A DNA stretch of 64,000 nt from Convolutriloba macropyga (Eukaryota). Position 1 is the first letter of the stretch, and the number at the start of each line of letters is the position of its first letter. Location: NCBI RefSeq assembly GCF_964194025.1, contig NC_134479.1, positions 49,166,001 to 49,230,000 on the forward strand, in the 5' to 3' direction. This document shows, in pieces, positions 4,041 through 64,000 of the stretch. Made by a program: the position numbers and the translations under genes. Below the pieces are notes generated by a model. That model was not told where the DNA came from, ran no database searches, and was given only the letters and a program-made list of their open reading frames with translations.

Positions 4041-5298
4041 TTTTCCACTTACAGGTCCGAAAAATAAAAATTCAGCAAAAAATTGCCTTTCTCTGACTTG
4101 AACTGCGTCAAAAAGAAGGAAAAGTCATTATCATATTCATGGCACCGCTTTATTTCCTCCCATACCGATACTACCCTGAGTGCGCCAATGACCTATCCCT
4201 TCTTTTTCATGCCTTGCACGTCAGAGAAGAGCAAGATTTTGCTCACTCTTTGGTTTTGCATGTTTTTGTCCGACCCAATAACTATTAACAGATAAAAATT
4301 GAACACTTATAAATGGTAAAAGTCTCAAAAACCGTCGTTGAAAACCCAAACCCACACTAATACATGCTTAACACTGCATGCTTTTTATGTTCTTTGGGCG
4401 CCACTTTTTGCCTGCTGGCCATTGCTTAAAAAGATTCACAAGGTTCAAACCCAAATAACCCCTCGTTTCTGATGACCCCAAATTATAAGGCCGCTTGAAT
4501 ATGTTGAGAAACATGTTGCTCATTAACTCGGCAGTGAATTAGTATATAGATTTTCAGGTGATAAATATAAACATTGCTTACGCAATTCAAAATCCTACAC
4601 TACACGAGAATTTTAATAAGTCTGGCTTTGGTCCGTATTTTGACGCAATAAATAATGGTTCCAGCTATTCAACTATAAATTATGGAATAAAAATTATAGT
4701 CTACTCGTGCGGTTTTAATTTGAAGGCTCTATTTGTTACATTTCAAACTTATCAAATTAAAGTCGATATATTTCTCAAGAAGCGTCAGCATGCCTTAGAC
4801 ACAGTAGTCAATATTCTCAAATAGGTGTCAAATTATCTTTTAAGCTGCACTAAAACGAAACCAGGATCGGGATTATAATTTATGAAATTTATTATTATTT
4901 TTCATGAGCTAGAACTGAATCTATATCAACTGCAAATTTAAAAACTACAGACGAAAATACAGACCAAGTTGGAAGCTCGCTGTATAAAAACCACAGACAA
5001 AATTCATGGAATAGGAAACTAATGCTGCAGGATTAAATTTGAGTTTTATCGCTAAATTGACCGTCTGTCTTTAAATGATCAAGATATACAAAATGAAGTT
5101 ATTTCATAAATAAGAAGTATCAAAATATTTAAGCCAGAGACAGCGAAGATTTAGGGTTACGATAGAAAACCTACATAAACTTAACTTCTTCGAAAGCTGA
5201 AACTCTCCTGTTTTAAAATGCGCTTAAATATCTGACAGTTTAGAGAACAAAAATAATTAAAAGCATGAAAGAATCAAAGTGAAAGTCGTAATCGTGTA

Positions 5299-44545: not shown

Positions 44546-44572
44546 AATTGTTGTGATAAACTTATTAAATAG
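44546..44572 (+). other. Spliced-leader-like 27-nt sequence at the LINE 5' end
   Basis: AATTGTTGTGATAAACTTATTAAATAG, identical to 63285-63311, ends in AG 13 nt before the ORF1 ATG. SL identity is inferred. Confidence 0.6.
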
Positions 44573-44585
44573 TTTCCGGTTGGAT

Positions 44586-45544
44586 ATGACTAATGAATGT
44601 GAGATGGCAACTGAGACCGAAGAAAGAAACCACCAAGAGAACAGCGAGGAAACTGCGACTGATGTAAACGTTGACCTACCAGCATTGAGATTTCATGACA
44701 GAACACCAGTAACGAAACCCAGTACCAAAAGGGCCCATACAGAGTTATCCCAATAAGTGACGCGGACGAGCCACAAACTGACACATGGAAATCTATCGAG
44801 GAGGCAATTAAAACTTCAATCTATCGAGGAGGCAATTAAAACTTCAATGAAGCAGCTATCCCGGCTCTTATACAGCAAATCTTAAATAATTTGACAGAAA
44901 GGATAAGCTAAACAGTTGACACTGCTGTAGCAAAGGCGAAAGAGGAAATTCTGGAAAGTGTTGCGGCCGACATGACAATTGAACGAAAAGCTGAACTACG
45001 AAGCCTATGTGAAGCAGTACAGCCAGAGACCTATAACCGACGCGAAAACTTAAAGATTTTCAATGTGGACGAAGAAATTCGCAAGGACACAAACGGCTTC
45101 TCTATACCTGAACCTCTTGAGTCTACTATTAATAAAGTCTCGCAAATTACAAGGAACTTAGGCGCAACTGTAGACGTCAAGGATATATCAATTGCCCATC
45201 GCCTCCGTGCAAAGAAGGGAACGAACCCCATCATCGCACGGCTCTCCCGAAGAATGGCAAAAATAGATATTATGAAAAAGAGAAAACTTTTCGAGAATGG
45301 CAGCCAAGTCAAGATATTTGAAGACGTCAGCAGAGCGAGACTAACTTTCATTGACACGAGGAAAAGTGACAAAAGAATTTCTAAAGTATGGACCAAGGAA
45401 GGCAGTATAATATACACATTCCATAATGATAGAGAAATTTTGAAGATTTATAATCTGTATGATGGTGCTATTGCTCTAAGCTATGATGTTGAAGATGCTT
45501 TACAGTGTTTTCGTAGGCAGGTATTTCCTGCCGGTAACTTCTAA
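44586..45544 (+). pseudogene. LINE ORF1 (coiled coil plus RRM-like, L1-ORF1p-like), broken by stops and a 28-bp tandem duplication at 44793-44848
   Basis: ORFs 44553-44756 and 44972-45544; duplicated CTATCGAGGAGGCAATTAAAACTTCAAT. Confidence 0.8.
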
Positions 45545-45559
45545 CTCCATCAATATCTT

Positions 45560-48350
45560 ACCAAATGCCAACTCTCCAATTCAACTATCTGTGCATTTAA
45601 ATTTCAGATCTTAAAAAAGTCACCTTGAGGAACTGGAAGCACTAGTTTTAATCTTTGAGTCTCCGCCTGTTGTTAATTGTTTAACTGAAACATGGCTAAC
45701 CGATAATGATCATCTCCAAAGCTATACACAAAAGGGGTACAACCAATTCTTTACAAAAAATAGGGAAACCCCAGATGGAGGTGTAATGAGTCAAGTAAAA
45801 AAAAACCTGCACCATCTTTAGACAAAGCTTTCTAGACTTTGATGAAGCAATCTCCGCAGATATAGCGCTTGTGAGATTTAAATTAGTTACCATTTACACT
45901 AAGCCGCGCACCAACAAAATGGACTTTAGAAAAATTGGGTATTTAGAAGAAATTATCTCAGTCAGCGTTCGCGTCGTGATCTGTGGTGATTTCAACATTG
46001 ACGCTCTTACTACACATCTGGTCTCTAATAAATGTAAAAAAGCAATAATTGCCGATGGATTTGAAAATCAGCCGGAAAATCCAACACTTGTCACCGAAAA
46101 TTCAAAAACATGCATTGACCATTTTATTTACCAGGATGTGCTGAACCCAAGCTTCGAAGTGTTAGGGAATGAGGCCATCACAGATCACTACCCTATTCTA
46201 ATGAGATGGGACGTTGAACCGGATTGCTCACGTTCATGCCAAGTGTATAGAGATACATCTTTCCTATGAAATCATCGAAAAACAAAAAAAATTCAATGAA
46301 ACACTAACTGAAAATTTAAGAAAAATTCAGAACCAGGTGAGTATTGAACCAGATGTGGATAAAGCGTTCAAGATATTTCATGATACATTTGACTCAACAT
46401 TACTTGAATTTTCCTCTTAAAATCGGCTAAAAATAAGACAGGCAATCCCTGCCTGGTTTGATCATAAGCTGAAAAATCTTAGATCAAAACTCATTAACGA
46501 CATAAACGGCAAAGTGAAAACAAAAGAAAACATACCCCCTCTAGATAATATAGTAAAAGAACACAACCAGACACCTACCGAAATAGCTAATAAACTAAAC
46601 GAATTCTTTACTAGCGTAAGGGATTCTCTCGCAAGACATCACCAAAACTCCATTACCAGTAATTGAACGCGTAGATATATCAATGTTTCTATATGATGTC
46701 ACTCCAGCGAAATAAAGTGTATCTTAGATAGTCTAGACAAAAAATCATCTTCAGGGGACGATTACATTAGTAACCTCATTCTGAAGTCAGTGTCTCATGA
46801 AAATTTTCCGTATGTGGCCTATCTCATAAATATGTCTCAGAAATGGCATTTTCCCATCAGAACTAAAAAAACAAAAGTCATTCCGCTACACACAGGTTTC
46901 CAAGGCGGATCGAAATAATTAACGGCCCATATCGTCATTTAAAGTATTCAGTAAAACTTACGAATGTGCAACGTAAAACAGAATATATAACTTTCTAGAA
47001 AATTTTATGCTTCTTTATGGAAAATAATTTGGCTTTCATTGCAAACAAAGCACAATCGATGCTCTAATTGAACTATTTGAAAAAATATAAGATTGGATAA
47101 GACAAAAAACATTTACAGTTTCTTCCTTGATTTGAAAAAAGCCTTTGACACTGTAGATCACAAAATTCTGCTAAACAAATGGTTTTAGGGGAAAGATATG
47201 ATTTTAGGGGCAACGCTCTTAGTTGGCTGATATCGTACTTGTCCAATAGAATTCAGCGGGTAGAAGCAAATGGATACTTATCTGAATGGCAGAAAGTAAC
47301 TACGGGTGTACCCCAAGGATCCATTCTCNNNNNNNNNNNNNNNNNNNNNNNNNNNNNNNNNNNNNNNNNNNNNNNNNNNNNNNNNNNNNNNNNNNNNNNN
47401 NNNNNNNNNNNNNNNNNNNNNNNNNNNNNNNNNNNNNNNNNNNNNNNNNNNNNNNNNNNNNNNNNNNNNNNNNNNNNNNNNNNTTGTCAGTCTGTTGACG
47501 TACTACTCTTTGCCGACGACAATAATTTGACCGCTATGAACTGTAATGTATATGACATTGAGGTTGACCTACTCAATCTTAATAACTGTCTGAATTGCCA
47601 ATAGGCTGAAACTGAACTTAACCAAAACAGTCCAAATGAATATTAAATCTAGTGCTTCCCATTCTACCTTCTTCCTAAGCTCTTTGCCTTTAGAAATAAA
47701 ACCTGTCTGTAAATACCTAGGTGTCTATGTTGATAACAGACTTTCATTTCTCTCACATGTAGACAACGTAAAAATGAGACTCGGGAGACAATCAGGCATT
47801 TTATCTAAGCTTAGACACTTCCTTCCTCGTTCCCAATTAATACGATATTATAATAGTAATATGCAACCCAAAATTCAAAATGGCTAACGTGGTTTATGGC
47901 TGCACTAGCCATAATAACCTTGAACCAATTTTGAAACTGCCAAAGAAAATTTTGAAATACATTTATTTCAGAAACAGACGTGACAGTTGTAATGATATTT
48001 TTGAAAATAACCAAATCGTTACGTTTTATGAGATTCAAATATAATAATTACTCAAGTTTACGAAGATCAATCAATAACCTGCATAAACAAGAGTTTTTGA
48101 ATAATAGGTTTTGTTTTTCGAAAATTCTAGAATGACAAGATCAACTGAACACGCCCTTCTCTTTGTAAGACGAAAATTGAGCGATTTTCGATAAATTACC
48201 GTGCTAGCAAATTATTCAACCTTCTCAAATGCAAAGGAATACTGCCTCCAGAAATAAATGAAATGAATATATCAAAAATAATGAAAATTTATCACGAAAT
48301 AAAAAACGCATTTTTGCTCCAAAATGCTGATCTAATGAAACATATATTGA
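45560..48350 (+). pseudogene. LINE ORF2 (APE endonuclease and reverse transcriptase), frameshifted
   Basis: ORF fragments 45871-46269, 47179-47604 and 47636-47887 carry APE and RT motifs. Confidence 0.88.
47329..47483. other. Assembly gap or masked run of 155 N
   Basis: N run between PQGSIL and FADD of the LINE RT. Confidence 0.99.
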
Positions 48351-48376
48351 GCTAATCAAATTTGGCCAAAAGTTAA

Positions 48377-48734
48377 CCCCATGGCTGCATGCTACAGGAG
48401 GTGCAATTCTGAGCCCTGATTCTGGCCTGAAAGTTTGACCCCTCTATCTCTTCTAGTTTGAGAGATATCGCCATTTTTCAATTTTTTTTGGAATTTTCCA
48501 AAAAACTTGAAAATTATCAAAAAATTTTAATTTTTAAATTCCAGTCTTCTCCACCATGATCAACGACTTTATTTAGAGTGAATTGGCAAGCTGAATTTGC
48601 CGCCTAAAAAATTTAAAGATGAAAATTGCTCGACTAGAAACCAACATTAGAAAAAAATATATATTTTTAATTTTGTTTCCCATAAGCTGTAATAAGTTAA
48701 TTCTGCCAACAATAAACAACATGTGTAGCCAGGG
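48377..48734. mobile_element. Possible piggyBac-like MITE nested in the LINE 3' UTR
   Basis: TTAA|CCCCATGGCTGCA ... TGTAGCCAGGG; imperfect TIR, and the right TTAA is not preserved. Confidence 0.3.
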
Positions 48735-49309
48735 TTGTTACTTGGAGGGTCACAGGACCCCGTTTATATATTATATTGTTTGTTGTTGATGATATACTGG
48801 ATAAATAAATTCTTTCCCTCTTTCTTTCTCAGGCTGACCATATACTGACTAATGTTGGCTGCAATGATGGTACCACGTGGAAGCTTCAGACGCAAAAAAA
48901 GTCACTAAAAAAGAGCAATGCTGCTCATAAAAAGAACAGTCTGAAATGTGGGTAGTAATAAGAAAAAGGGCAGCTGAGAACAGGCCGAAGTCGCCTAATG
49001 CTGTTCCGCTGCGATTATGCAGGAACCAAAATTATTATTATTACATTCGAGATCTGCTGGCCTAACAGGTTTAAATATGTAAATTCACAAGGATTACATT
49101 TCCATTCTCACATCAAGGTTTTGTAGTATTTTACAATTAACATTTTCCAATGTTATCCGACAATAGATCACCTTCACTATACGTCAATCAATAATACTTT
49201 AAATAGGTACATCAATTGATGGTACCACTGAGTCAACGATAACTCAACTCCGAAAGCAATTACTTCCAACACTGACAACAAAAAAGAATTCTCAATACTT
49301 CTCGCCTAC

Positions 49310-49409
49310 CTGTGGCTTTCGATCCCATAGAATGTGTGTTTGTAACATCCTCCTCTCCCTCTTAGCATACTTTTAGTCCACCTGCACAATTTCACTCCGC
49401 TGTGGGAAC
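49310..49409 (-). CDS. TYW1: TYW1 exon
   Basis: TTCCAG|(G)SHSGVKLCRWTKSMLRGRGGCYKHTFYGIESH(R)|GTAGGC. Confidence 0.97.
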
Positions 49410-49849
49410 CTGGAACAACATGAAAACTTAATTTAATTGCATAAACACATCGAAAAATCACCTTGATAATTTTATATTGGAACTGAAACAGAAAATACAA
49501 AACGCTTCAGTTCACATTTCTAGTGATTTCGAGGACAAAAATACTCCAGTAAAAATTTTGTGGCTGAAAAAGCGTTAAATGAAATCAGTAGGAGAGAAAT
49601 TGTCCGGTGCAAATTTTACTACGAGAACAAATCTTTACAGCATCACTACACAATCGAATTCCACCTGAAAAGTCGCAAGCAACACAAAAGTCTCTGCACA
49701 GACGGTAGATTTTGTTTATATTGAAAAATGCGTCGGAGAAATATACCTGGTGGTCAATCAACAGAATCAAATGAATTCTGTTTAACATTAATTTACTGCT
49801 CGAAAATATCGAAGGACAGCATTCTGAGAAAAAAGTGGCAAAACTCATC

Positions 49850-52800
49850 AAACATACCCGGCAGATTGCCTGAAAATAGCCGCCGTTGATTCCAATAAGC
49901 ATGATTGGGATTGAAAGAATAGAAGATATTGAAAAAAAAAGATTTTTGTACAAAAACATTTTTTTAGTCCAATTTATTTTGATGGCATTTCGTAGTTGAA
50001 CATAACGTACTTCTGTTTCTTAGAGAGAGGCTACAGGGGCTACTATCAACACCAATAAGCATTAGAGATGGTAACTAAGACTTATAGGAACGACGTTCAA
50101 ATAGCGGGCATCTAAAATTGGGCTTTATGGGTTTATCCCGTTTCTACTTCTGACATCAATTTTTTATACTGACTCTGTTCATTTTGAATTGCTTTGCTGA
50201 GCAACTGATGCTCAAACTCACTTTTAGCGGAATGAGAGAAGAGAGAAAGTAGACTAGAGAAGTCAAAAAGATTTCACGCAAAATGTCGAAAAAGCGGCAA
50301 AATGAGGTAAAGCGAAACATTTTTTTATTCGACGAAATAAAAAACATAGCAGGACAAGTCCTGACGTACAATTCAAAGAATTTTCATTGACTAAACAGAA
50401 AAATTAGACCTAGAAAGGACTATGAAAGAATTGAGAAAACCATTTTAATAAAATCAGATCAAAAAAATAAAAAAAAAACAGAAAATCAATGTCAAAATGC
50501 CGCATGTGAACAAAAAAAAACCACTAGCGAGAAATGAAAATTTAATTCAAACAAAAAACTAGACCTAGAATGAGCTGTGAATGGATTGGGAAAACCATTT
50601 AGAATAAAATGCGGTCCAAAAAATCGAAAAAACAGTAAAAATCAGAGTGAAACTGCCGCATGTGAACAAAAAACCGCTACCGAGAAACCGAATTTTTGTT
50701 CAAACATCGTTTTCTCACTATACTTTAAAATTAGAGCGAAAAAATTCACGCCGCAAAACCACTCGCTTTTTCGCTCCACTTCCTGTTTCGGCGTGACCAA
50801 AATCACTACTCCAATTTGACTTCAAAAATCATGAAAATGTGTGAACAGATCTTAAAACATAGCCGGAAGAATTCCGGAAACGACTCGGAGGAGAAAATTG
50901 CCCATACTTTTGACTAAACAACTAGAACAACTATTGTGAACCCTGAACCTAAAAAATTTAAGCCATAAAAAATAAAAAATTTAAGGAAGAATAGAAACGG
51001 CATTCAACAACAAATTGTACAAAAAACTAGAATAAATTAATGAGTTTTTTTAATTAGTACAAGGAAACATAAAGCCGAGTAAAATTCCTTTCCAATTAGG
51101 TCAATGGAAAACTCGAAAAATGGGCAAGTCATAATAGGCTAAGGTCTAAGATTGAAAAAAAAAGAAAAACAGCAAAAAAAAAATAAGAAAAAAGGTTTAA
51201 AATTTCTCAATTGTTCCGTCAATTTTCCGAAGAAAAGAAAGATTTACTCAATTGGTAGCTGAATATTCCTTAAGTGACAAGCTTCCATTAAAATCCCACT
51301 TAAAGCATTAATACAAAAAAAAAACAGGCAAAAAATCATTAAATTTCGTCTAAAAATCAGCAAAATCAGCAAAAACTCATCAAAACCCTCCAAATTAGCA
51401 TTAAACTTGAATTAACTACTTGAAACCTTCAATTCCTATCAAAACAAGCCTAAAACTAATACAATATCATAATCAAACCTCATAACCATCAAAAGTTGCA
51501 AAAAAACTGCTTTTAAAAGCCGCACGTGAACAAAAAAATTTCGCTCGCTTAGAGAAAATTTTTTCACACATCAATTTCTCGCTCTATCAAAACAGCGGTA
51601 TGAACAAAAACCACTCTCTTTTCGCTCCGCTCTCAACTTTTGTTCAGCTCCAAAGTCACTCGCAAAACCACTCGTAGCCGGAAGAATTCCGGAAACGACT
51701 CGGAGGAGAAAATTGCCCATACTTTTGACTAAACAACTAGAACAACTATTGTGAACCCTGAACCTAAAAAATTTAAGCCATAAAAAATAAAAAATTTAAG
51801 GAAGAATAGAAACGGCATTCAACAACAAATTGTACAAAAAACTAGAATAAATTAATGAGTTTTTTTAATTAGTACAAGGAAACATAAAGCCGAGTAAAAT
51901 TCCTTTCCAATTAGGTCAATGGAAAACTCGAAAAATGGGCAAGTCATAATAGGCTAAGGTCTAAGATTAAAAAAAAAAGAAAAACAGCAAAAAAAAATAA
52001 GAAAAAAGGTTTAAAATTTCTCAATTGTTCCGTCAATTTTCCGAAGAAAAGAAAGATTTACTCAATTGGTAGCTGAATATTCCTTAAGTGACAAGCTTCC
52101 ATTAAAATCCCACTTAAAGCATTAATACAAAAAAAACAGGCAAAAAATCATTAAATTTCGTCTAAAAATCAGCAAAATCAGCAAAAACTCATCAAAACCC
52201 TCCAAATTAGCATTAAACTTGAATTAACTACTTGAAACCTTCAATTCCTATCAAAACAAGCCTAAAACTAATACAATATCATAATCAAACCTCATAACCA
52301 TCAAAAGTTGCAAAAAAACTGCTTTTAAAAGCCGCACGTGAACAAAAAAATTTCGCTCGCTTAGAGAAAATTTTTTCACACATCAATTTCTCGCTCTATC
52401 AAAACAGCGGTATGAACAAAAACCACTCTCTTTTCGCTCCGCTCTCAACTTTTGTTCAGCTCCAAAGTCACTCGCAAAACCACTCGTAGCCGGAAGAATT
52501 CCGGAAACGACTCGGAGGAGAAAATTGCCCATACTTTTGACTAAACAACTAGAACAACTATTGTGAACCCTGAACCTAAAAAATTTAAGCCATAAAAAAT
52601 AAAAAATTTAAGGAAGAGTAGAAACGGCATTCAACAACAAATTGTACAAAAAACTAGAATAAATTAATGAGTTTTTTTAATTAGTACAAGGAAACATAAA
52701 GCCGAGTAAAATTCCTTTCCAATTAGGTCAATGGAAAACTCGAAAAAATGGGCAAGTCATAATAGGCTAAGGTCTAAGATTAAAAAAGAAAGAAAAACAG

Positions 52801-53466
52801 CAAAAAATAATTAAGAAAAAAGGTTTAAAATTTCTCAATTGTTCCGTCAATTTTCCGAAGAAAAGAAAGATTTACTCAATTGGTAGCTGAATATTCCTTA
52901 AGTGACAAGCTTCCATTAAAATCCCGCTTAAAGCATTAATACAAAAAAACAGGCAAAAAATCATTAAATTTCGTCTAAAAATCAGCAAAATCAGCAAAAA
53001 CTCATCAAAACCCTCCAAATTAGCATTAAACTTGAATTAACTACTTGAAACCTTCAATTCCTATCAAAACAAGCCTAAAACTAATACAATATCATAATCA
53101 AACCTCATAACCATCAAAAGTTGCAAAAAAACTGCTTTTAAAAGCCGCACGTGAACAAAAAAATTTCGCTCGCTTAGAGAAAATTTTTTCACACATCAAT
53201 TTCTCGCTCTCTCAAAACAGCGGTATGAACAAAAACCACTCTCTTTTCGCTCCGCTCTCAACTTTTGTTCAGCTCCAAAATCACTCCAAATTTTTTTACG
53301 CGTTTCATTTCCCGCTTCAAAAATCACTCCAATAAAATTGATTAAAAAAAGGACTCCTCTTCTAGTCGTAAAAAGACAGCGCCCCAATACAATTCAAATT
53401 CTTTGAATTGTAAAAAAAAATAGGAGCGCTATAATAGCCGGCTGAGAAGATGAGGGCGGCTATTAA
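49850..53466 (-). mobile_element. Non-autonomous Helentron-like (DINE/HINE-type) element, family 2, copy A, carrying a central tandem array
   Basis: 10-bp subTIR pair AATAGCCGCC (49875-49884) / GGCGGCTATT (53455-53464); 5' short inverted repeat ATAGCCG...CGGCTAT; 3' hairpin GGCA-GAT-TGCC followed by GTATGTT on the minus strand. Ends match 55349-56938. Confidence 0.65.
50860..53287. repeat. Tandem array, three near-identical copies of a ~812-815 bp unit
   Basis: Unit start TAGCCGGAAGAATTCCGGAAACGACTCGG at 50860, 51675 and 52487; copies differ mostly in homopolymer length. Confidence 0.97.
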
Positions 53467-54916
53467 TTAAAAATTGAAAATAAATTGAGGATAAATAGAA
53501 AATCTCATTGACTGATTGAGAGAAAAACGAAGCAACCATCAATTACATTGTGCTTGCACCAATGAATTAGATAACAAACTTCGACACAAAAATTTACCAA
53601 ATTTCTAAACTAAAATTTCCAAAGCCAAGTAAAACTGTATTCAGTCATTCAGGACTGCAAACGATTATTCGTAGTAGCTGAAATCGAAGCTATTTACTTG
53701 ATGATTTTCTTAAAAGAGGACCTTTTGAGAAGCTTTTGTCGATCTCATATTGCTCTTTTTTAACAGTAAATGTTCTGGAATGAATTTCCTATGTAACTTA
53801 GCTATGAGATTTGCTTACATCTGTAAGTACTACGATTGGGGATTAAAATTGAACTCTCAATAAACTCTCAATTGAAAAGACAAATATATCAAATATTCCT
53901 TAAGTGACAAAGTGAATATTCCTTAAGTGACAAGCTTCCATTAAAATCCCGCTTAAAGCATTAATACAAAAAAACAGGCAAAAAATCATTAAATTTCGTC
54001 TTAAAATCAGCAAAATCAGCAAAAACTCATCAAAACCCTCCAAATTAGCATTAAACTTGAATTAACTACTTGAAACCTTCAATTCCTATCAAAACAAGCC
54101 TAAAACTAATACAATATCATAATCAAACCTCATAACCATCAAAAGTTGCAAAAAAACTGCTTTTAAAAGCCGCACGTGAACAAAAAAATTTCGCTCGCTT
54201 AGAGAAAATTTTTTCACACATCAATTTCTCGCTCTCTCAAAACAGCGGTATGAACAAAAACCACTCTCTTTTCGCTCCGCTCTCAACTTTTGTTCAGCTC
54301 CAAAATCACTCCAAATTTTTTTACGCGTTTCATTTCCCGCTTCAAAAATCACTCCAATAAAATTGATTAAAAAAAGGACTCCTCTTCTAGTCGTAAAAAG
54401 ACAGCGCCGCAATACAATTCAAATTCTTTGAATTGTAAAAAAAATAGGAGCGCTATAATAGCCGGCTGAGAAGATGAGGGCGGCTATTAATTAAAAATTG
54501 AAAATAAATTGAGGATAAATAGAAAATCTCATTGACTGATTGAGAGAAAAACGAAGCAACCATCAATTACATTGTGCTTGCACCAATGAATTAGATAACA
54601 AACTTCGACACAAAAATTTACCAAATTTCTAAACTAAAATTTCCAAAGCCAAGTAAAACTGTATTCAGTCATTCAGGACTGCAAACGATTATTCGTAGTA
54701 GCTGAAATCGAAGCTATTTACTTGATGATATTCTTTAAAGAGGACCTTTTGAGAAGCTTTTGTCGATCTCATATTGCTCTTTTTTAACAGTAAATGTTCT
54801 GGAATGAATTTCCTATGTAACTTAGCTATGAGATTTGCTTACATCTGTAAGTACTACGATTGGGGATTAAAATTGAACTCTCAATAAACTCTCAATTGAA
54901 AAGACAAATATATCAA
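52888..54916. repeat. Tandem duplication with 1025-bp period (52888-53892 and 53913-54916)
   Basis: Near-identical copies; ORFs 53196-53387 and 54221-54412 are offset by exactly 1025 bp. Confidence 0.95.
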
Positions 54917-55348
54917 CGGAAATTTATCTTCGATATACCTGCATTCACATGCAGACCAATTTAAACCCATCAGTGAAGCAATATTTTCAGATAAAATTAT
55001 TGAGGCAATCAAGGGTCATATAATAAACATAAATCTTAAAAAAAAATAATTTTTATCTCGAGACGGATTTTTTGTCTGACAATATCTCCACTAATTACTT
55101 TTTGAGACTGAATTTTGTCAATAAATAAAATAAACGACATTAAACGAAATTATATACAATAAAAACAATTTTAAAAGTTTCAAGAAACATTTACACGCGA
55201 GAAAACCTTTGTTAATCAAGTTCAATTTCAATTATCAGTGAATTTTCAATGCTATATTAGCTCTAAACAATGGAAACTGTTTGAAAACATAAAACAAAAC
55301 CCTACCATAAAATAACTTAAAATCTTTTTAAACAAGTAAAATCTTTTA

Positions 55349-56938
55349 AACATACCCGGCAGATTGCCGGACAGTAGCTGCTATTACCAAACTAAATGAT
55401 TTAAGATATTTTAAGCGCGAATTATTTTGATTTCATTTCGTTGTTGGAAATATTCCTGTTTCTCATTGACAGGATACATGAGCTCGTATCAATACCAATA
55501 AGCACTAGAGATGGTAACTAAAGATTTCACGCAAAATGCCGAAAAATAGGTATAATTACGAAAAGCGAAACACATTTTTTTCGTCGATAAACTAAAAAAC
55601 AGCAAGACAAGTCCTGAATTACAACAAAAAAATGAATGGATAACTTCAAAACTCAATTGACAAACAGAAGAATTGAATAGCAAGCCAAAAAAATAATTAA
55701 CATAATTTGAGAATTATCAAAGAAATTGAATTGTAGATACTCTCGTTAAGGTAACGAGAAGCAATCAATTTTATACAAAACTTTGAAAACAAAAAACACA
55801 AAGTGCTTTCCGGACACAAACAAATCAAAAGCAAAAACCACAAAAATTGAATTTTTTGTAAAAGCAAGTTTTTGATAAAAATTTTCAAAATTCCTCAAGT
55901 GAATGTCGACGGAAACATTACTGTGTTGTTAAAGATTATTCAATAACCCAGCAACAAGACAAGCTAACCATTAATTGGCTGTTTTCACAAAAAATGCAGT
56001 TAGAAAAACCATACAACTTTATTCTAAAAAACGGCGATTTCAAGACAAGAACTACAAAATGACAAAATAGCAGGCTATAATAAAGTTTGGGGTTATATAA
56101 GAGTCGAATAGAGGGCAGAACAGAGGGCTAAACCAGAAAATTAAAATTACAAAAAAGGAGATAAAAATCATATTAAAAACTTTCAAAGTAGCTTCTGTAA
56201 TGGTAAAATCTATTTATTGCCATAGTTTCAAGTTCTGAAGAAGATTCATTGCCCCCAAAAAGAACTTGAAAAAGAACACAACATTTTCAAAAATTAGCAG
56301 AAATCATTAAAATTTTGCTGAGGTTTGTGATGTTAATCTCCTTAAAAACTTATCTGGATCCGTAAAAAATATCCATTCAAATTAAAGCCTGAAAACTGTT
56401 TCATTGGTCACTAAAAGTAAAAAAAAATCTGAAAATTTTTAAAAACTTCTAAAAAAACGTAATAAGAAGTTGCAAAAATAAAAGATAGACAAAGTCAAAA
56501 TCATTCCTGTGTAGTTAAAATAACTTCATTAACCTATTTTCAAGCCATAAAAATTTTTGTTTTGGCCTATAAAAATGAAAACAAATGAAAAGAGACAAAA
56601 AGTATGAAAAACTCGGCATACTTAACAAAAAGAAATCAAGCACAAAATGATAAAAAAAAGCATTTCGTATATCAAAAGAGCCATTTAGAAAAACCAAATT
56701 AACCAAAAATTTTAAGACAACAAGGAAAAATTGCTTCACTCAGGGCTCAAAAACAGCGATAACTGACCTTTTCACAATAAATTTAGGCCTTCCAGCAGAT
56801 TAAGCGCGTAAAAGTTTACTAAAACCAGCTGAGGTGCTCTATTGCTAAAACCATGGAAAAGCGTGTAAGATAGAGCGCCAATACCATCCAAATAGGAGCG
56901 CTATCATAGCCTGCTGAGAAGATGATAGCGGCTATTAA
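55349..56938 (-). mobile_element. Non-autonomous Helentron-like element, family 2, copy B
   Basis: Hairpin CCGGCA-GAT-TGCCGG (55356-55370); subTIR AGTAGCTGCTAT / ATAGCGGCTATT; end motif TAGGAGCGCTAT.ATAGCC.GCTGAGAAGATGA..GCGGCTATTAA shared with 53421 and 54446. Confidence 0.6.
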
Positions 56939-57018
56939 ACATCTTTGACCAAATACTCACATCGAATTAGTATCTTTATTGAATTTTTAGGCATCAGAAC
57001 AAATCTACAAACTCTAAC

Positions 57019-57210
57019 CTATCAATTTGTATCCTTGCTTCGTTAGTGATTCTCTTATCAGTGGTGTCAACATTTCTTTCTTTATCTTCGTAGCCTTTGC
57101 ATCTCCATTTTCAATTGATTTTTCATTTTCCTCGTCTTCGAGTTTTGACTCCATTCTTTTCTTTATGACCTCACCCATATCTTCCAAATCCAGAGAAGAT
57201 GAGTTATTGC
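57019..57210 (-). CDS. TYW1: TYW1 exon
   Basis: TTTCAG|(G)NNSSSLDLEDMGEVIKKRMESK...KEMLTPLIRESLTKQGYKLI(G)|GTTAGA. Confidence 0.93.
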
Positions 57211-57745
57211 CTGAAAAATTTCAACAAAAAATTCTCGGAAAAACTCGGACACAATTGAACACAGCTATGGCCCATTTAGACGACAGCGAGTTTAGCTGAC
57301 AAATAGTTCAGCCGGCCGCACACCAATTCTCATGTCAACGAAAAGTAGTAATATTTTGACGAATCCGATTCTTCTACCAATCAGAATCAGGCGTCTTCAA
57401 ATTTCTCACTTTTTTCCATGTCAGCTAAAACATTTCCATCCATGTCCTGGCAATCGCGAACGTGTAGCATATGAGAATTTAGACTGCTCGAATATTTTAG
57501 TTGGTAACCTAATTTGACAACTAAATTACAAATGATCATTACATCATGGTGTTCTGGACTTCAATGGAGTCCGAAAGCTGAATAAGTCCCCAGCTAATCC
57601 ATTACCCCCAAAAGACGGTGTCAGGACAAAATACCCAATGCCGATATGCCCAATGTGACAAAATACGCAAAATTACCCAATATTTATCCTAATCTTGAAG
57701 TTACCAGAACGATTATTTAGCTTGTGCATTTGACCATGCCTTGAG

Positions 57746-60700
57746 GCCAAAATGTTGTGATTATGTGTAAAATGCTGTTATTGTGACTTTTGGATCAGTA
57801 GCTCAAAGTGTGAGAGGAAAACCAAAAGCAAGTACTCCACTTTGTGTAGGAACGTCCTTTGGGAGTGAGACTTTTCTAAAAAGCGACTTTTGGCTACCTT
57901 TTCTTCAATAAAACTACTAATACATGGCCAAACCTAATTAAGGCTTAAATTACCCTCTCACACACACCGATCCATTTTGGAGCAACAGCAATGCAGCTCA
58001 TTTTTGAAGGTCCCGGCTTCAGAATCAATGAGCCGGAATGCAAGAGTCACCAGCATACTGAAGATGAAAATCATTCCCCGTTTACAAAGCATCCCTTCAG
58101 ATACGCTGACAACATTCAGAAGGCTTTAAATTAGGTGTTCAGAAGCCATCATACTGAATTTCAGCCGAAACAGGCACAATATAAGCTTGACAAACACGTT
58201 TACAACGATCGGAGCGAAACGATTACATACGATTCTGATTATAGCGCCAATCGAAGCGGCTGAAGATAGGAAAACCTGAAGATAAACGGCCTAAACATAT
58301 TGAAGAGAACAAAGTTCCCGCTACCGACGAATCTTGGCGCCTTGACTTTGATGGTATCCGGAAGAGATTTGTTGAAGCTTAAAGCCGCTGCATCGCCAGA
58401 AAGATAAGTTGCCTGAAGGAGAATATTACAAAGGCAGAGCATCAATTCTTTTAAACGTTAAAAAACTAAGAAGACGAAACTGCACTGCGAGAGTGAGCAT
58501 TCGAGTCTGCCACTGGCCGAAAACTGTTCGATTGGCTACACATACCTTTCAATGCGCATACGCGCTCATTGACCACGTGTTCGCACAAGCCTCGCATTAT
58601 ATACCATGAAGAATGGTGTGGGTTAAATCGAAACAAAAAGACAGCACAAAACGAAAAGAACCGGCAAGCAAAAAATATTTAGCGCAAAGCCCCAATACTG
58701 GAATTGAACCGCCGCAGTCGCCAAAACTTGAATCTAACCACTGCAATGAGCTATAGTTGCCAGTACGGGAATTGAATGCCTGCTATGAGACAAAATTGCT
58801 AGAATCGCCAATGAGGGATTGAAACCGACGCCTGCAGGAATGCCCTCTGACTTACGAATTGATGAAAATGAGAACTCCAGAACTCCTGAAGCTCTTCTGG
58901 TGTTCCGGTAACTAGTGAAGAGTGATGGTCAGAGGACGAGCCACCAAAAGAGGCAACCACAACATATCGCCAATAGATTTGAGGTTCTGCTCAAACCTAA
59001 TAACCTTCATAATTACTTGAAAATTGAAAACATTCAACAACCAGATAACCAGCAGCCAGACCATCTATCACTTTCATAGTTTAAACTTCTCTAAAACCTT
59101 CTAATATATATAAAAATGGCCCGTTTGTTTCAATGGCTAGCTATCGTAGTCTCGTCCGACAAGAATTTGTTAGAGCTTCTTTCCCAGTTCATGAAAAAAA
59201 TATGTAATCTCAGTTCAGGAAACAAAAATAGTAAGACCAAGTTGAAACCATCAAGCAATTTAACGTCGTTACAGAATGAAGTCTTTTATTGAACCATTAG
59301 GGCTTCTTTTAATTGTAACCTATAATTTGACAATTGAAGTCATGGGAAAAAACGTTTTCATTTATATTAATACAGAATAACTTAAAAGAAATGTTTGCAA
59401 CGATAAATCTGAACCCCTCATACCCAAGTACAAATATTATTTCCTTTCCTCAAATTGTTGAAAATTTTACCAACGGTTTCTCAATACAAATAGGAGGGAT
59501 CCTAATGCAATAGATCCAACTGCTGCTACAGCTAAAGTAGGGGCGGTAGACAGAAAAGATATCAGCAAGTCAGCGATAGTTTTAACTCAATGTGACGTTT
59601 TGATGTTCTCAAACAGGACAATAGTCTTAGAACACATTTTGAAAAAAAACAATAATTAAGAGTCTCGCATTGAGTACATTTTCAGCATCGAATGTTATCC
59701 AGTTGAAAGCGTCAAACCCATTAAAATATCTTTAAGTGACCATTACATTCTGCAGTAAGAAAAATTACGTAGAGAAGCGCTGGAAATTAGGCTACAACAT
59801 TATCAAGGATCCGAAAAACTCTCGGGAGATTTCTAGTATATTTGACAAAGTCTTTCATACTTTTAATCAAAAACGGCTAACAAACAATTATGATAACCTC
59901 AAAGCTAAGCTAAGAGATTGTCCAAGGTATTTCGACACAAAAGAACAAAAAAAGGAAAAGACATTTTTTGAAACAAAACAAATAGAGTGAAAACACTCCA
60001 ACCGAACAGCACCAATCAAACCCTTAAGCACCAGTTCACTCAATAAAATTTTTTGACAGATCTGAATTGCGGAGATTCGAAAGCTCTCAAAAACCTTCTA
60101 ACCAACATTAACTTTAAAACTTCCGCAGTTATAAAAAATAACGGGGGAAGTACCAGAGGATATGGACGAAGTAACAGGCTCATTTACAGAATACTGTACT
60201 AACATATATGGGAAAGAAGCTCAAAAGCCTGATAAAAAGATGCAAAGCAGAATCACACACTTTTCTAAAACGAATAAGCTAATCGAAAAAGCAATTCAAG
60301 TCAGACAATTTTAGTGAACAAGAGGTTACACATGCAATTCAAAAAATCACCAGCCAAAGTGCGCCGGGCTCTGACGTATTTACATCCAACTTATATGAAA
60401 CATGTTTCAGAAATCTTTAATTCAATAGCTGAAAAAAGTGCCTAATTTGTTTTGCATCTATTACAAAAATGCCGTGTACTAAATTCAGTGTGTTTTGTTG
60501 ATAACTTCAGACCACGAAGCTTGCATAATACCTATCTTGAAATTTTATCACAAGTTCTAGCGTATAGACTCAAAAAGCCAATGAAGATCTATATAGGAGC
60601 ACCAATTTGCTTACCTCCCAAACCACAGCATCAATACGGCTATCTTACCAGCTCGATTGGTTAAGGAAAAATTAGGCACATTAAACTGCAAAAGCAATGC

Positions 60701-61600
60701 ATGTAATGAAGTCAATGGCCAACTCTCGCGTTCCATTCAAATTGAGTACGGTATTAAGCCAGTTTGTCCACTTTCTGGTCTCCTATTTATTCGTAGACAA
60801 AATAAAAGTGATGGTCAATTTGTCGTGGAATAGCCAAATGGCATTCTTTGAACAAAAATCTATACTACCCTACTAAAAACAGCGGTATTGGCCTTCAAAA
60901 TTTGAAAACGCAAATTTTGCCGTGTAAACTGATAGAGCTTGCGAAAACAGGTAAAAGTATAAACAATACAACATCGATTGTCAAATCCAAACCAACTTGG
61001 GCTGATTAAGATTTTAATTACAAAGCACTGGTGCAGTATAGTTTATTTAAACAAGACTATCGAAATTACAAACCTGTCGAGTGCAAAACTTTATCAAAAA
61101 ATTAACAACACGCTCAGAGGTCAATGGAAGAATTGAGGAAAGAGTTCGAACTTTTTGTGACACAATAGATCAAGAGTTTTCAAACACATTGCTGACCTTC
61201 GTCAAAAACCTTTGGAAAATAAAACCATTAACACCGCTAGACAAAAACGTCCTCTATTTGCTGTTTTTGAAGTTAATTAGAAAAACCAACAAAATGGTTG
61301 AAAAACATAACAACACGCCCATTATGCTACTAATGTGAAAAAGACTTCGAAGCACCCGTTCTACGAATGCCCAATTGATGAAACAATTAGATCAATGTTA
61401 CCCATGACTAATATAACAAAGTTGATTAAATATAGAAATACGATAGGACTAAAAGTCTCAGTTGTCAAATTAAATTCGTCCTGGGTTGAAGAGGAGAGCA
61501 CTTACATGACTAAACTATAACCATTGTAAATATTGACTAATTATTTATAAACTTTATACTGCTTTTTGTTAATATGAGTAATTTGTAATTGATTTTTGGC
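57746..61600 (+). mobile_element. Decayed L1/Tx1-like LINE (boundaries tentative)
   Basis: SAPGSD (60358-60375), FRPRSLHNTYLEILSQVLAYRLK (cf. RPISLLN.DYKILSKVLANRLK), and a C-terminal C..C...HPFYEC motif (61324-61372). Many stops and deletions. Confidence 0.65.
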
Positions 61601-61634
61601 GCCATGCCATGAGCGCCATGGCCATGCCTGAGCT

Positions 61635-61726
61635 GCCAGTGCGACTTGATATGAATACAAGTTTGACATGAATACAAGTTTGCCAGTGCGACTTGATATG
61701 AATACAAGTTTGCCAGTGCGACTTGA
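61635..61726. repeat. Short tandem repeat, ~30-bp unit
   Basis: GCCAGTGCGACTTGATATGAATACAAGTTT repeated about three times with a partial internal duplication. Confidence 0.85.
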
Positions 61727-62199
61727 GTTTAATTATAAGAAAACAAGATAGTGATACCGAGTGCTAGTTTGTTATGGGTTCATTGAACGAAGGGATCAAT
61801 AAATTGCGCGTCAATTAACGCCAAAAGACTCATCAACGTTGTAAATTCAATTCTGCTGACAGCATTAATTGTGAAGTTGTTCTGTGATGTCTTCGGTTTA
61901 CATCTTAATTTAGTAAAACTATTCTAATTAACTGGATTCGAGTAATGAAGAAAATTCGCAACGCATGACGGCTGCAAACATTAATCTTAATCATTTATCG
62001 AAGTCTTACTTTTTTGCAATTTTATACATGAGTATTAAATTAAGTGGCTGCAAAATTAAACCCGTTTTTATTTAAAAAAATTATGACTATCGTTTTGTGG
62101 TCGGGCGGAATTGGAGTGTTATGATTTTTTTCGGCACTTCTCTGTTAGTAATTACGAAACGGTTGGTCTTTTCTGTTAACCACAGGAACAAAATCTCAC

Positions 62200-62422
62200 C
62201 TTTGTCAGCTCCATTAGTTTCATCTTCCTCATCTGAGCTCGCAAAATCTTCGTCCTCCGAAGAGTTATAACCATTTGTCTTTTCCGATTTGTTGTTCGCT
62301 TCGCCATTTGGAGTTGAGGCTTCTTTCTCCCCTTTACAAGAGCATGTTTTACAAGTACCGCAGCTCCCACCATGTGAAGAGGCTCCGTTCATCTCGGACT
62401 CGTGAGAGCTCAGAGCTTCAAC
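62200..62422 (-). CDS. TYW1: TYW1 exon (Cys-rich and acidic linker between the flavodoxin and radical-SAM domains)
   Basis: CATAG|VEALSSHESEMNGASSHGGSCGTCKTCSCKG...SSDEEDETNGADK(G)|GTGAGA; phase matches the 57210 exon. Confidence 0.85.
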
Positions 62423-63279
62423 CTATGCGGAACAAATGAGAAAAAAGTATATAGAATAGAATAGAAAATAGATCAAATAGAAAAAAATAGCGGACAACTC
62501 CTGAAATAAATTCAAAAGAATTTGACACAAATTTTGAAAAAATGCAAAGTTTGACCTGACTACCAGCATACATACAAAGTCCCATATCCGCAAAACAACT
62601 TTGAATTTAGAAATAGAAAGCAAAGGCAAAAAGAATAATTCTCAAGATTCGCAAAGAGCTTATTTCTATTGCAATAGTTATCTAAGACAGAAGAAAATAA
62701 ACACACAATAAAAAAAAGAACATTGTTAATTTCCTCTGATACACATGAGAACAAAATGCAAATGGTAAAAGAGGCAATGTAAAGTTAAGAACATAACATT
62801 ATGTAAAATTATAAAATCATTAAATTACTTAGCTAAAAAATTCACCTTACATTAGTAAAAACTGGCCTAAAATGCGAGCATAAAATGTTCTCACAATTTT
62901 ATATGTACATCATGAAGATTAGAAATAAAAATCTAATGCTCTCAATGTCATCTTTCATATCAGTTACTTTTGGTCCTTCAAAAATTCTTTCCAAAAATAT
63001 TCTTTCAGTTCTCTTTTTAAGGAAGCTTTCGCTGTTGTTTTCAGTTTTCTAAAATTGTTGTTTTCAGTTTTCTAGAATAAACACCACATTGGATCACTGA
63101 AAAACACTAAACATTTCTTTCACAAAATTACAAAAAACACAATGTTATACAAAAACTGATGAAGCAATAACCTTATTTCAATCTAACACAACCCAATTGC
63201 TACGATTAGGAAAAAATAAGATGAACAAATACCAAAATTTCAAAAATAACACTTAAATTGCTGATAAATTTCATGTTAA

Positions 63280-64000
63280 GCCTAAATTGTTGTGATAAAC
63301 TTATTAAATAGATTTGTCTTTGTTGCGAAATTTGTGATCCTTAGTTCTAATTCCTGTGGTAAATTGAGATTTTCGTAACGTTCAAATGCAAGTTCCAAAG
63401 AAAAAGGAAGTTTGAGAATTTTGATACCTCTGATGATGAAGTTTCAGACGATGTAATTAATTGTCGAAAACCTCAATTGAAAGATATCAAAGACAATATC
63501 AAAGACAATTAAATAGAGCTCTGTATAGTGTATAAAACAGCCTTACTGGGTGGCTTTATCAGCAGTATCATCTTGATGCCCCTACGAAAAATGAATATTC
63601 CCGAACATCTCCAGCGTGTTATGGCCTCCGAAAATATTGAGGAATCAGTCAAAACCCTGATGCAATATCTCGTGACTGAAAATGAAAGGAAGGGAGAAAG
63701 AATAAAGCAGCTTGAGTCCCAGATGACAGGAGTAACCATCAAAGTGAATGAGCTTGAGCGTTATGAGTCCAAAGATTGTCTAATTTTTCATAACCTTCCA
63801 ATAGGCCAGCATGGCTCCTATCTGTCGGATACTGTGGCGTTCATGAGAAACATCCTACAAGTCAACATTTGCGAAGAAGATCTAAAGGCTTGCCATCCTC
63901 TGGGCAAAGGAACAAGCAGCTATCCTCCGAAAATAGTGGCTAAGTTCATTTACAATGATCAAAAAGACCGGGTTTGGGCAAGAAAGAGACTTCTACGTTC
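63280..64000 (+). mobile_element. 5' end of a second LINE family (ORF1, truncated by the window edge), starting with the SL-like leader
   Basis: GCCTAAATTGTTGTGATAAACTTATTAAATAG, then an open frame from 63576: MPLRKMNIPEHLQRVMASENIEESVK...IKQLESQ...VNELERYESKDCLIFHNLP...DLKACHPLG...IVAKF...VWARKRLL, a LINE ORF1 coiled-coil plus RRM pattern. Confidence 0.8.
63285..63311 (+). other. Spliced-leader-like 27-nt sequence at the LINE 5' end
   Basis: Identical to 44546-44572; sequence on either side is unrelated between the two sites. Confidence 0.6.

Follow-up and report, generated by a model that had tools for sequence, protein, structure and literature searches.

LINE retrotransposons of an acoel worm carry a DNA copy of the host spliced leader at their 5′ ends

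Introduction

In dinoflagellates, a genome-encoded spliced leader (SL) without its donor marks sequences that were trans-spliced and then reverse-transcribed, and repeated rounds of this recycling of processed cDNAs leave stacked or truncated relict leaders (for example, PMC5585692 and PMC6050394). In Schistosoma mansoni, genome-encoded SL exons merged to transposable elements led to the suggestion that SL-containing retrotransposons might be trans-spliced, retro-transcribed elements, although there were only six cases and misassembly could not be excluded (PMC5832876). In Hydra, transposable-element RNAs use the host SL trans-splicing machinery, and about 30% of transposable-element Iso-Seq reads carry an SL, which is RNA-level evidence only (PMC12220107). 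A different association is that of the SL-gene-targeting LINEs (NeSL-1, SLACS, CRE, and CZAR), which appear to insert into SL genes of nematodes and trypanosomatids using a REL-type endonuclease.

Here, we analyzed a 64,000-nt stretch of the acoel Convolutriloba macropyga (NC_134479.1, positions 49,166,001 to 49,230,000; referred to as the window), in which two different LINEs are associated with the same 27-nt motif. The original prediction was that this motif is a host SL, that each copy marks the 5′ boundary of its LINE, and that the LINE RNAs were trans-spliced and then fully reverse-transcribed. Our results confirm the motif and support this interpretation, with one correction concerning the second copy.

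Results

The 27-mer occurs exactly at two positions in the window, both on the + strand (Table 1). There were no other matches with up to 3 mismatches, and 0 were expected in 100 shuffles. Identity between the two copies stops right after the final AG, with TTTCCGGTTGGATATG following the first copy and ATTTGTCTTTG following the second. The two elements share no nucleotide similarity apart from the leader and one 44-nt patch in the reverse transcriptase (RT) region; the element 2 ORF1 query gave no hit on element 1, and ORF2 identity is 33 to 43%. The shared leader is, however, longer than 27 nt, as the second copy includes the AGCCT extension with one extra A. The full leader is about 32 to 34 nt, (TT)AGCCTAATTGTTGTGATAAACTTATTAAATAG, and the 27-mer is its 3′ part.

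Table 1. Positions of the SL copies and LINE features in the window
Position	Strand	Feature	Description
44546..44572	+	SL copy	DNA copy of the host SL; 5′-truncated (lacks AGCCT); 5′ terminus of element 1
44546..48828	+	Element 1	Old, degenerate APE-type LINE with frameshifts and stops; end at about 48828; family copies 82-90% identical; (TTCT)n-like tail at about 48800-48828
44586..45544	+	Element 1 ORF1 remains	ATG 13 nt after the SL; frame interrupted around 44754; homologous to ORF1 of the L017/L030-type SL-headed LINEs
45582..46269	+	Element 1 endonuclease region	APE / Exo_endo_phos, read in pieces
46833..48059	+	Element 1 RT region	Read in pieces and in several frames
47329..47483	.	Assembly gap	155 N inside the RT, between the PQGS and FADD motifs
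63280..63311	+	SL copy	Full-length DNA copy of the host SL (AGCCTAAATTG..., with one extra A), with the 27-mer at 63285-63311; 5′ terminus of the chimeric retrocopy
63312..63503	+	Captured fragment	192 nt of a non-LINE RNA; 97% identical to a unique locus at C7:57107570-57107761, where the match begins immediately after a ...TTATTTTCAG acceptor
63508..63516	+	SL remnant	ATTAAATAG, from the LINE RNA's own SL; template-switch junction (inferred)
63517..64000	+	Element 2	Young APE+RT LINE continuing about 3.9 kb beyond the window (L046 517 to about 4921); ORF1 open from 63528 (first ATG at 63591); beyond the window, ORF2 of 973 aa open and an (AATTT)n tail
L numbers are our labels for SL-headed LINEs; C numbers denote chromosomes.

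The motif is identical to the SL published for Symsagittifera roscoffensis, GCCTAATTGTTGTGATAAACTTATTAAATAGA, where 30.2% of genes (10,433 genes) are reported to be trans-spliced (PMC9911081). The corresponding SL genes are also present in this genome. A total of 1,409 matches to AGCCT, the 27-mer, and GTA (donor GTAAGT) were found in tandem arrays on C9 (23.1 to 23.8 Mb and around 62 Mb), where the repeats alternate with 5S rRNA (120 bits). The predicted fold of the SL RNA places the donor in stem-loop I and includes a terminal 3′ stem-loop (minimum free energy, −34.4 kcal/mol; z = −6.1), with UUUUAUUUGAAU, judged by eye to be a single-stranded Sm-like site, between the stems.

The 27-mer had 2,784 hits in the genome at up to 2 mismatches. 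Of the exact copies, at least 518 are dispersed and lack the donor, being followed by a base other than G. In an unselected sample of 30 dispersed copies, which was small and came from one chromosome with 1.5-kb flanks, 20 had an APE endonuclease match within 1.5 kb and 26 had ORF1 or EN homologues. The other four carried LINE-type ORFs, namely, an esterase-like ORF or a zinc-finger ORF with coiled coil. These 30 copies fell into 16 nucleotide clusters and included no host retrogene. Pfam searches of ORF1 and accessory ORFs mostly returned no family, with a weak PHD match in one ORF1 type, and an Atlas search returned only generic APE+RT clusters.

Element 2 had matches to RVT_1 (5.9e-39) and Exo_endo_phos (26.2 bits against a cutoff of 24.5), whereas the element 1 endonuclease scored just below the cutoff (24.2 and 21.5 bits) and its RT aligned to that of element 2 in pieces. 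Both sides of the assembly gap in element 1 are colinear with element 2 ORF2: residues 623 to 666 align before the gap and, by eye, the FADD motif region follows it. The comparison predicts about 16 missing residues, whereas 155 N are written. The written N-run happens to keep the frame, but since the gap length is only an estimate, continuity and frame cannot be established across it. Both families consist of dispersed copies with a common 3′ end, a simple-repeat tail, and variable 5′ truncation.

All six 5′-complete copies of element 1 and all 10 element 2 copies whose 5′ region was found begin with the SL next to unrelated flanks, and the SL decays together with the old family. Nine flank pairs of element 2 gave no target-site duplication signal above mismatched controls (scores of 6.3 and 6.0, respectively), and the insertion boundary therefore rests only on where similarity between copies ends. 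No SL-less source copy with an intact outron was found for either family. Thirty of 47 copies keep at least AGCCT, and 16 keep TTAGCCT as in the SL gene, indicating that the RNA 5′ end was reached.

In sister copies of element 2, the SL joins at two alternative positions, either directly to AGCTCTG or to a 34-nt segment that ends in TTTTTCAG and precedes AGCTCTG, as expected for alternative AG acceptors. The same pattern occurs in L006/L026 (CATTTCAG), L008/L010 (TGTTTCAG), and L004/L016 (TTTCAG). The two element 2 forms share a star phylogeny with no diagnostic sites and are therefore alternative products of one source population.

Contrary to the original prediction, the second SL copy does not abut its LINE. 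It lies 205 nt upstream of the true 5′ end of element 2 and heads a captured fragment that is not LINE sequence. In the window, the SL joins this fragment exactly where the C7 locus has its ...TTTTCAG acceptor, and the fragment joins the LINE inside the 9-nt remnant of the LINE's own SL. An SL-complementary element in the host outron at C7 was rejected, as its duplex energy (−11.8) lies within the control range.

Discussion

The most likely explanation, to which we give a probability of roughly 0.88, is that LINE transcripts in this acoel receive the SL by trans-splicing at AG acceptors close to ORF1 and that the element's RT then copies the whole spliced RNA, leader included, such that new insertions begin with a DNA copy of the SL that lacks the GT donor. 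Trans-splicing of LINE RNA is inferred here from DNA alone, since the only sequencing runs examined, all of one study, behaved as genomic DNA (even depth across 3.2 kb, with no SL loose end at the C7 acceptor). On this reading, the process has occurred in many LINE families over a long time; element 1 is an old product, and element 2 belongs to a young family made the same way. The window's copy of element 2 is a chimera in which, by inference, the RT left the LINE RNA inside its SL, 9 nt before the SL/LINE junction, continued on another SL-capped RNA from chromosome 7, and ran to that RNA's 5′ end.

Similar to the dinoflagellate retrogenes, relict or stacked leaders are seen here, both in L001/L002 (SL, 32 nt, and a truncated SL) and in the 9-nt remnant in the window. 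In comparison, the tagged sequences here are almost all the retrotransposons themselves rather than host genes (30 of 30 in the sample), the host is a bilaterian animal, and this SL ends in AG, so reuse of that AG would leave no relict. Compared to the six cases in Schistosoma, there are hundreds to more than 1,000 copies here, whole families start with the SL, and the alternative acceptor junctions are visible. The evidence from Hydra is at the RNA level, whereas ours is at the DNA level only. The window's element 2 copy also resembles U6-L1 and other template-switch chimeric retrocopies that seem to occur in mammals, in that the 5′ part of another RNA is fused to a LINE, but here the partner is an SL-capped RNA copied to its capped end and the switch point lies inside the LINE's own SL. 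Neither this scale nor the SL-complementary hairpin modules described below were found in the papers recovered by full-text search.

For the second copy only, it is possible, though unlikely, that the chimera arose by cis-splicing of a host exon onto a LINE lying in its intron rather than by a template switch. LINEs inside introns could be spliced to upstream exons, and three LINE families share a 20-nt segment after the SL that could be such a captured mini-exon. However, the junction lies inside the SL remnant (ATTAAATAG) and not after an AG acceptor, the C7 match ends at no GT donor (the nearest GT, ATGG/GTAAAA with the slash before the GT, lies roughly 5 to 11 nt beyond the end of the match), and no element 2 copy lies near the C7 locus.

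A less probable alternative for the elements in general is that the RT reached the 5′ end of an unspliced LINE RNA and jumped onto a free SL exon or SL RNA, which would resemble the U6-L1 chimeras. Template switching is indicated by the window's chimera, and partial SL stutters lie upstream of about 8 of 47 copies. Nevertheless, only the exon is ever attached, never the SL RNA intron, and in four families (plus the C7-derived fragment in the window copy) the downstream side of the junction falls right after a ...YAG acceptor visible in longer sister copies or in the source locus, which a transcription start would not do repeatedly. Insertion of NeSL-, SLACS-, CRE-, or CZAR-like elements into SL genes is excluded by upstream flanks that all differ and are unrelated to the SL gene, the absence of a GTAAGT intron after the elements, and an APE-type endonuclease. 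A single LINE family with a conserved 5′ untranslated region, or the terminus of an unrelated short repeat, is refuted by the low ORF2 identity, the differing ORF1 types and 3′ tails, the 16 nucleotide clusters headed by the same leader, and its presence as the exon of the SL RNA gene.

If the main reading is correct, every SL-headed copy records an RNA that was trans-spliced and copied to its cap, giving a natural tag for full-length retrotransposition in an animal. It also suggests that LINEs can dispense with an internal promoter where SL trans-splicing exists, which would help explain how LINEs obtain their 5′ ends and how 5′ untranslated regions are exchanged. Genome-encoded leaders will also be mistaken for trans-splice sites, or will mask them, in the gene models of this genome.

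At least four families also carry an SL-complementary hairpin module. Tentatively, the LINEs of this acoel may be promoter-less parasites of the trans-splicing machinery, in which an SL-headed copy is transcribed by read-through from its surroundings and then cut out as its own mRNA by a fresh SL added at the relict leader's terminal AG or at a TTTCAG acceptor just after it. Some families would add a module complementary to the SL that forms a stem-loop-I-like hairpin and influences this step, and the common SL-capped 5′ end would ease exchange of 5′ leaders between families and capture of host RNA, as in the window's chimera. The 103 SL+TTTCAG copies in the genome are dispersed and not arrayed, on which basis an SL gene variant ending in TTTCAG was rejected.

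Identification of the leader motif

The 27-mer AATTGTTGTGATAAACTTATTAAATAG was present exactly twice on the + strand of the window, with no other match at up to 3 mismatches and none expected by chance. After the final AG the two copies differed completely. A full-text search for the last 22 bases of the motif returned only the Symsagittifera roscoffensis genome paper and its preprint, which give the spliced leader (SL) as GCCTAATTGTTGTGATAAACTTATTAAATAGA and report 10,433 trans-spliced genes, or 30.2% of all genes (PMC9911081). The 1.18-Gb genome holds 2,784 copies of the 27-mer at up to 2 mismatches. Of these, 1,409 are AGCCT+27-mer+GTA; tandem arrays of them lie on contig C9, where the repeats alternate with 5S rRNA genes on the opposite strand. 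The 100-nt transcript was predicted to fold with the 3' half of the leader and the GUAAGU donor in stem-loop I, followed by a U-rich single strand (UUUUAUUUGAAU) and a strong terminal stem-loop (z = -6.1). This is a canonical SL RNA gene. The SL RNA genes come in at least two upstream-flank types (array loci L036 and L040 compared with L031-L033 and L039) and also differ by an indel downstream of the terminal stem-loop.

Coordinates of the features described in the text; positions are those of the window unless a contig or locus is named
Feature	Position	Strand	Remark
27-mer, first copy	44546-44572	+	Heads element 1
Element 1	44546 to about 48828		Similarity to family members ends at about 48826-48831
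Gap in element 1	47329-47483		Between the PQGS and FADD motifs of the RT
Interspersed repeat	48829-49043		About 215 bp; abuts the 3' end of element 1
27-mer, second copy	63285-63311	+	
Leader of the chimeric copy	63280-63311		
Captured fragment	63312-63503		192 nt; matches C7:57107570-57107761 at 97%
Leader-like segment in captured fragment	63341-63363		Also in the matching part of L057
Leader remnant	63508-63516		ATTAAATAG, the last 9 nt of a leader
LINE body of element 2	starts at 63517		
ORF1 of element 2	open from 63528		
3' end of element 2	L046 about 4900-4921		L046 position = window position minus 63000; (AATTT)n tail
SL RNA gene arrays	C9, 23.1-23.8 Mb and around 62 Mb		
Stacked leaders, L001 and L002	C1:3264621 and C1:3269765	-	
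Tandem repeats of leader-headed fragments, L043 and L044	C2:15835451 and C2:76712333		955-bp and 2,177-bp period, respectively
Shared 20-mer followed by GT	C10:56509315-56509336	-	

Dispersed copies of the leader

At least 518 exact 27-mers are followed by a base other than G and are spread over all large contigs. We read the first 30 places by coordinate on contig C1 (L001 to L030). Most are preceded by (TT)AGCCT, as in the SL gene; counting also the family copies read later, 30 of 47 keep at least AGCCT and 16 of 47 keep TTAGCCT. [quoted passage not shown] Short partial repeats of the 5' part of the leader (for example, AGCCTAATT) lie just upstream of the full leader in L001, L007, L008, L024, L027, L028, L030, and L054, as expected if the reverse transcriptase jumps between SL-capped RNA ends.

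The sequences after the AG fell into 16 nucleotide clusters. Twenty of 30 places had an APE-endonuclease match within 1.5 kb, preceded by an ORF1, and 26 of 30 had ORF1 or EN homologues. The remaining four carried LINE-type ORFs, either esterase-like or zinc finger plus coiled coil, and none of the 30 looked like a host retrogene. At two other loci, L043 and L044, leader-headed fragments have been amplified as tandem repeats in which the leader is not followed by GT. SL-tagged retrogenes are already known in dinoflagellates, six uncertain SL-TE merges have been reported in Schistosoma mansoni, with the same idea offered tentatively, and SL has been found on about 30% of TE transcripts in Hydra. 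In our literature searches, we found no description of SL-headed LINE families in acoels or at this scale.

Three LINE families with different ORF1 types (L004/L007/L020, L011/L016/L017, and L015) share the same 20 nt (AGATGAGCCAGCGAGGCATG) right after the leader and then diverge. Of 43 genomic hits to this 20-mer, exactly one is followed by GT. It could be a source mini-exon, or the pattern could reflect 5' leader swapping between families.

Two LINE families in the window

In element 1, the ATG follows the leader by 13 nt, and ORF1, EN, and RT are recognizable but broken. The six 5'-complete family copies are 82 to 90% identical, and all start with the leader, whole or lacking a few 5' bases, next to unrelated flanks. 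Their leaders carry substitutions, as expected of old relics. After the leader all have TTTCC(A/G/C)G, and one copy reads TTTCCAG, which looks like an acceptor. The sequence before the gap in the RT is colinear with element 2 ORF2, and by eye the FADD motif follows the gap. About 16 residues are expected to be missing, but the gap length is only an estimate, so the frame cannot be judged. Similarity to family members ends in a (TTCT)n-like tail, and an unrelated high-copy repeat follows, which has no leader and copies about 88 to 90% identical. Of 2,296 candidate matches to a 1.6-kb probe in a first survey, 40 hits were scored and 29 of these were this repeat.

Element 2 was read in a 10-kb stretch (L046) running from within the window past its end. 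Its ORF2 is open, is 973 aa long, and matches Exo_endo_phos and RVT_1 (5.9e-39). Some 14 copies spanning most of the 3' probe are 97 to 99% identical. No TSDs could be shown when flanks were compared. ORF2 identity to element 1 is 33 to 43%, the ORF1 types differ, and there is no nucleotide similarity apart from the leader and one short patch in the RT region; the two are different families.

Alternative leader junctions

The nine sister copies of element 2 whose 5' ends we read begin with the leader in one of two ways. In three, the SL is joined directly to AGCTCTGTATAG, while in six, the SL is joined to a 34-nt segment (ACTCACTATTTGGTAAGTTTATCAAAGTTTTTCAG) and then AGCTCTGTATAG. The extra segment ends in a textbook acceptor exactly at the junction of the short form. 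The same relation holds in three other families, with CATTTCAG, TGTTTCAG, and TTTCAG. Over 1.6 kb, almost all of the 98 variable sites among the ten copies are private, and none separates the two forms. The forms are therefore alternative products of one source population. Although trans-splicing of the LINE RNA is inferred here from DNA alone, this is what alternative trans-splice acceptors predict, and what a jump onto free SL does not.

A chimeric copy of element 2

The window's copy of element 2 is a chimera. Its leader is followed by a captured fragment that within the genome matches only one locus, on chromosome 7 (C7). At C7 the match begins immediately after ...GATTATTTTCAG, so the AG of the leader replaces the AG of the acceptor. 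The C7 match ends without a GT donor at that point, and a few bases later comes the 9-nt leader remnant, after which the LINE body starts. The simplest reading is a template switch, in which the reverse transcriptase left the LINE RNA inside its SL and finished on another SL-capped RNA. The C7 locus has no long ORF nearby and may itself be an old SL-headed retrocopy: the captured fragment and the matching part of L057, the C7 locus, contain TTAGTTCTAATTCCTGTG(G/A)TAAA, which resembles the first 22 nt of the leader. However, this signal is borderline, as its score only equals the best of 223 control windows. We therefore refer to the source as a non-LINE transcript rather than a host mRNA.

Possible propagation of SL-headed copies

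No SL-less source copy was found for either family. L001 and L002, which are near-identical duplicates about 5 kb apart, show a full SL, then 32 nt, then a 5'-truncated SL, and then the element. This stacked relict leader indicates two rounds of trans-splicing and retroposition, from which we infer that an SL-headed copy was transcribed from upstream, trans-spliced again, and re-inserted. In addition, 103 of the exact dispersed copies read SL+TTTCAG. Together, these observations fit read-through transcription plus re-splicing at the AG of the relict leader or at an acceptor just after it, although this remains an inference without RNA data.

Segments complementary to the leader

In at least four unrelated LINE families (the element 2 sister copies L051-L056, L024, L026, and L028), the segment between the leader and the TTTCAG-type acceptor is complementary to the leader. 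Duplex energies are -17.6 to -23.2 kcal/mol, compared with lowest energies of about -12 to -14 in control windows of the same loci. With the leader, these segments were predicted to form 13- to 19-bp hairpins (z = -4.3 to -7.1) resembling SL RNA stem-loop I without the donor. It is possible that they affect SL recruitment or acceptor choice, but this is no more than a guess. In three families the complementarity extends further than in stem I of the SL RNA itself, and the segments are therefore not simple copies of the SL intron. Two further families (L003 and the L010/L013/L014 group) carry a shorter, weaker version, judged by eye or by energies within the control range.
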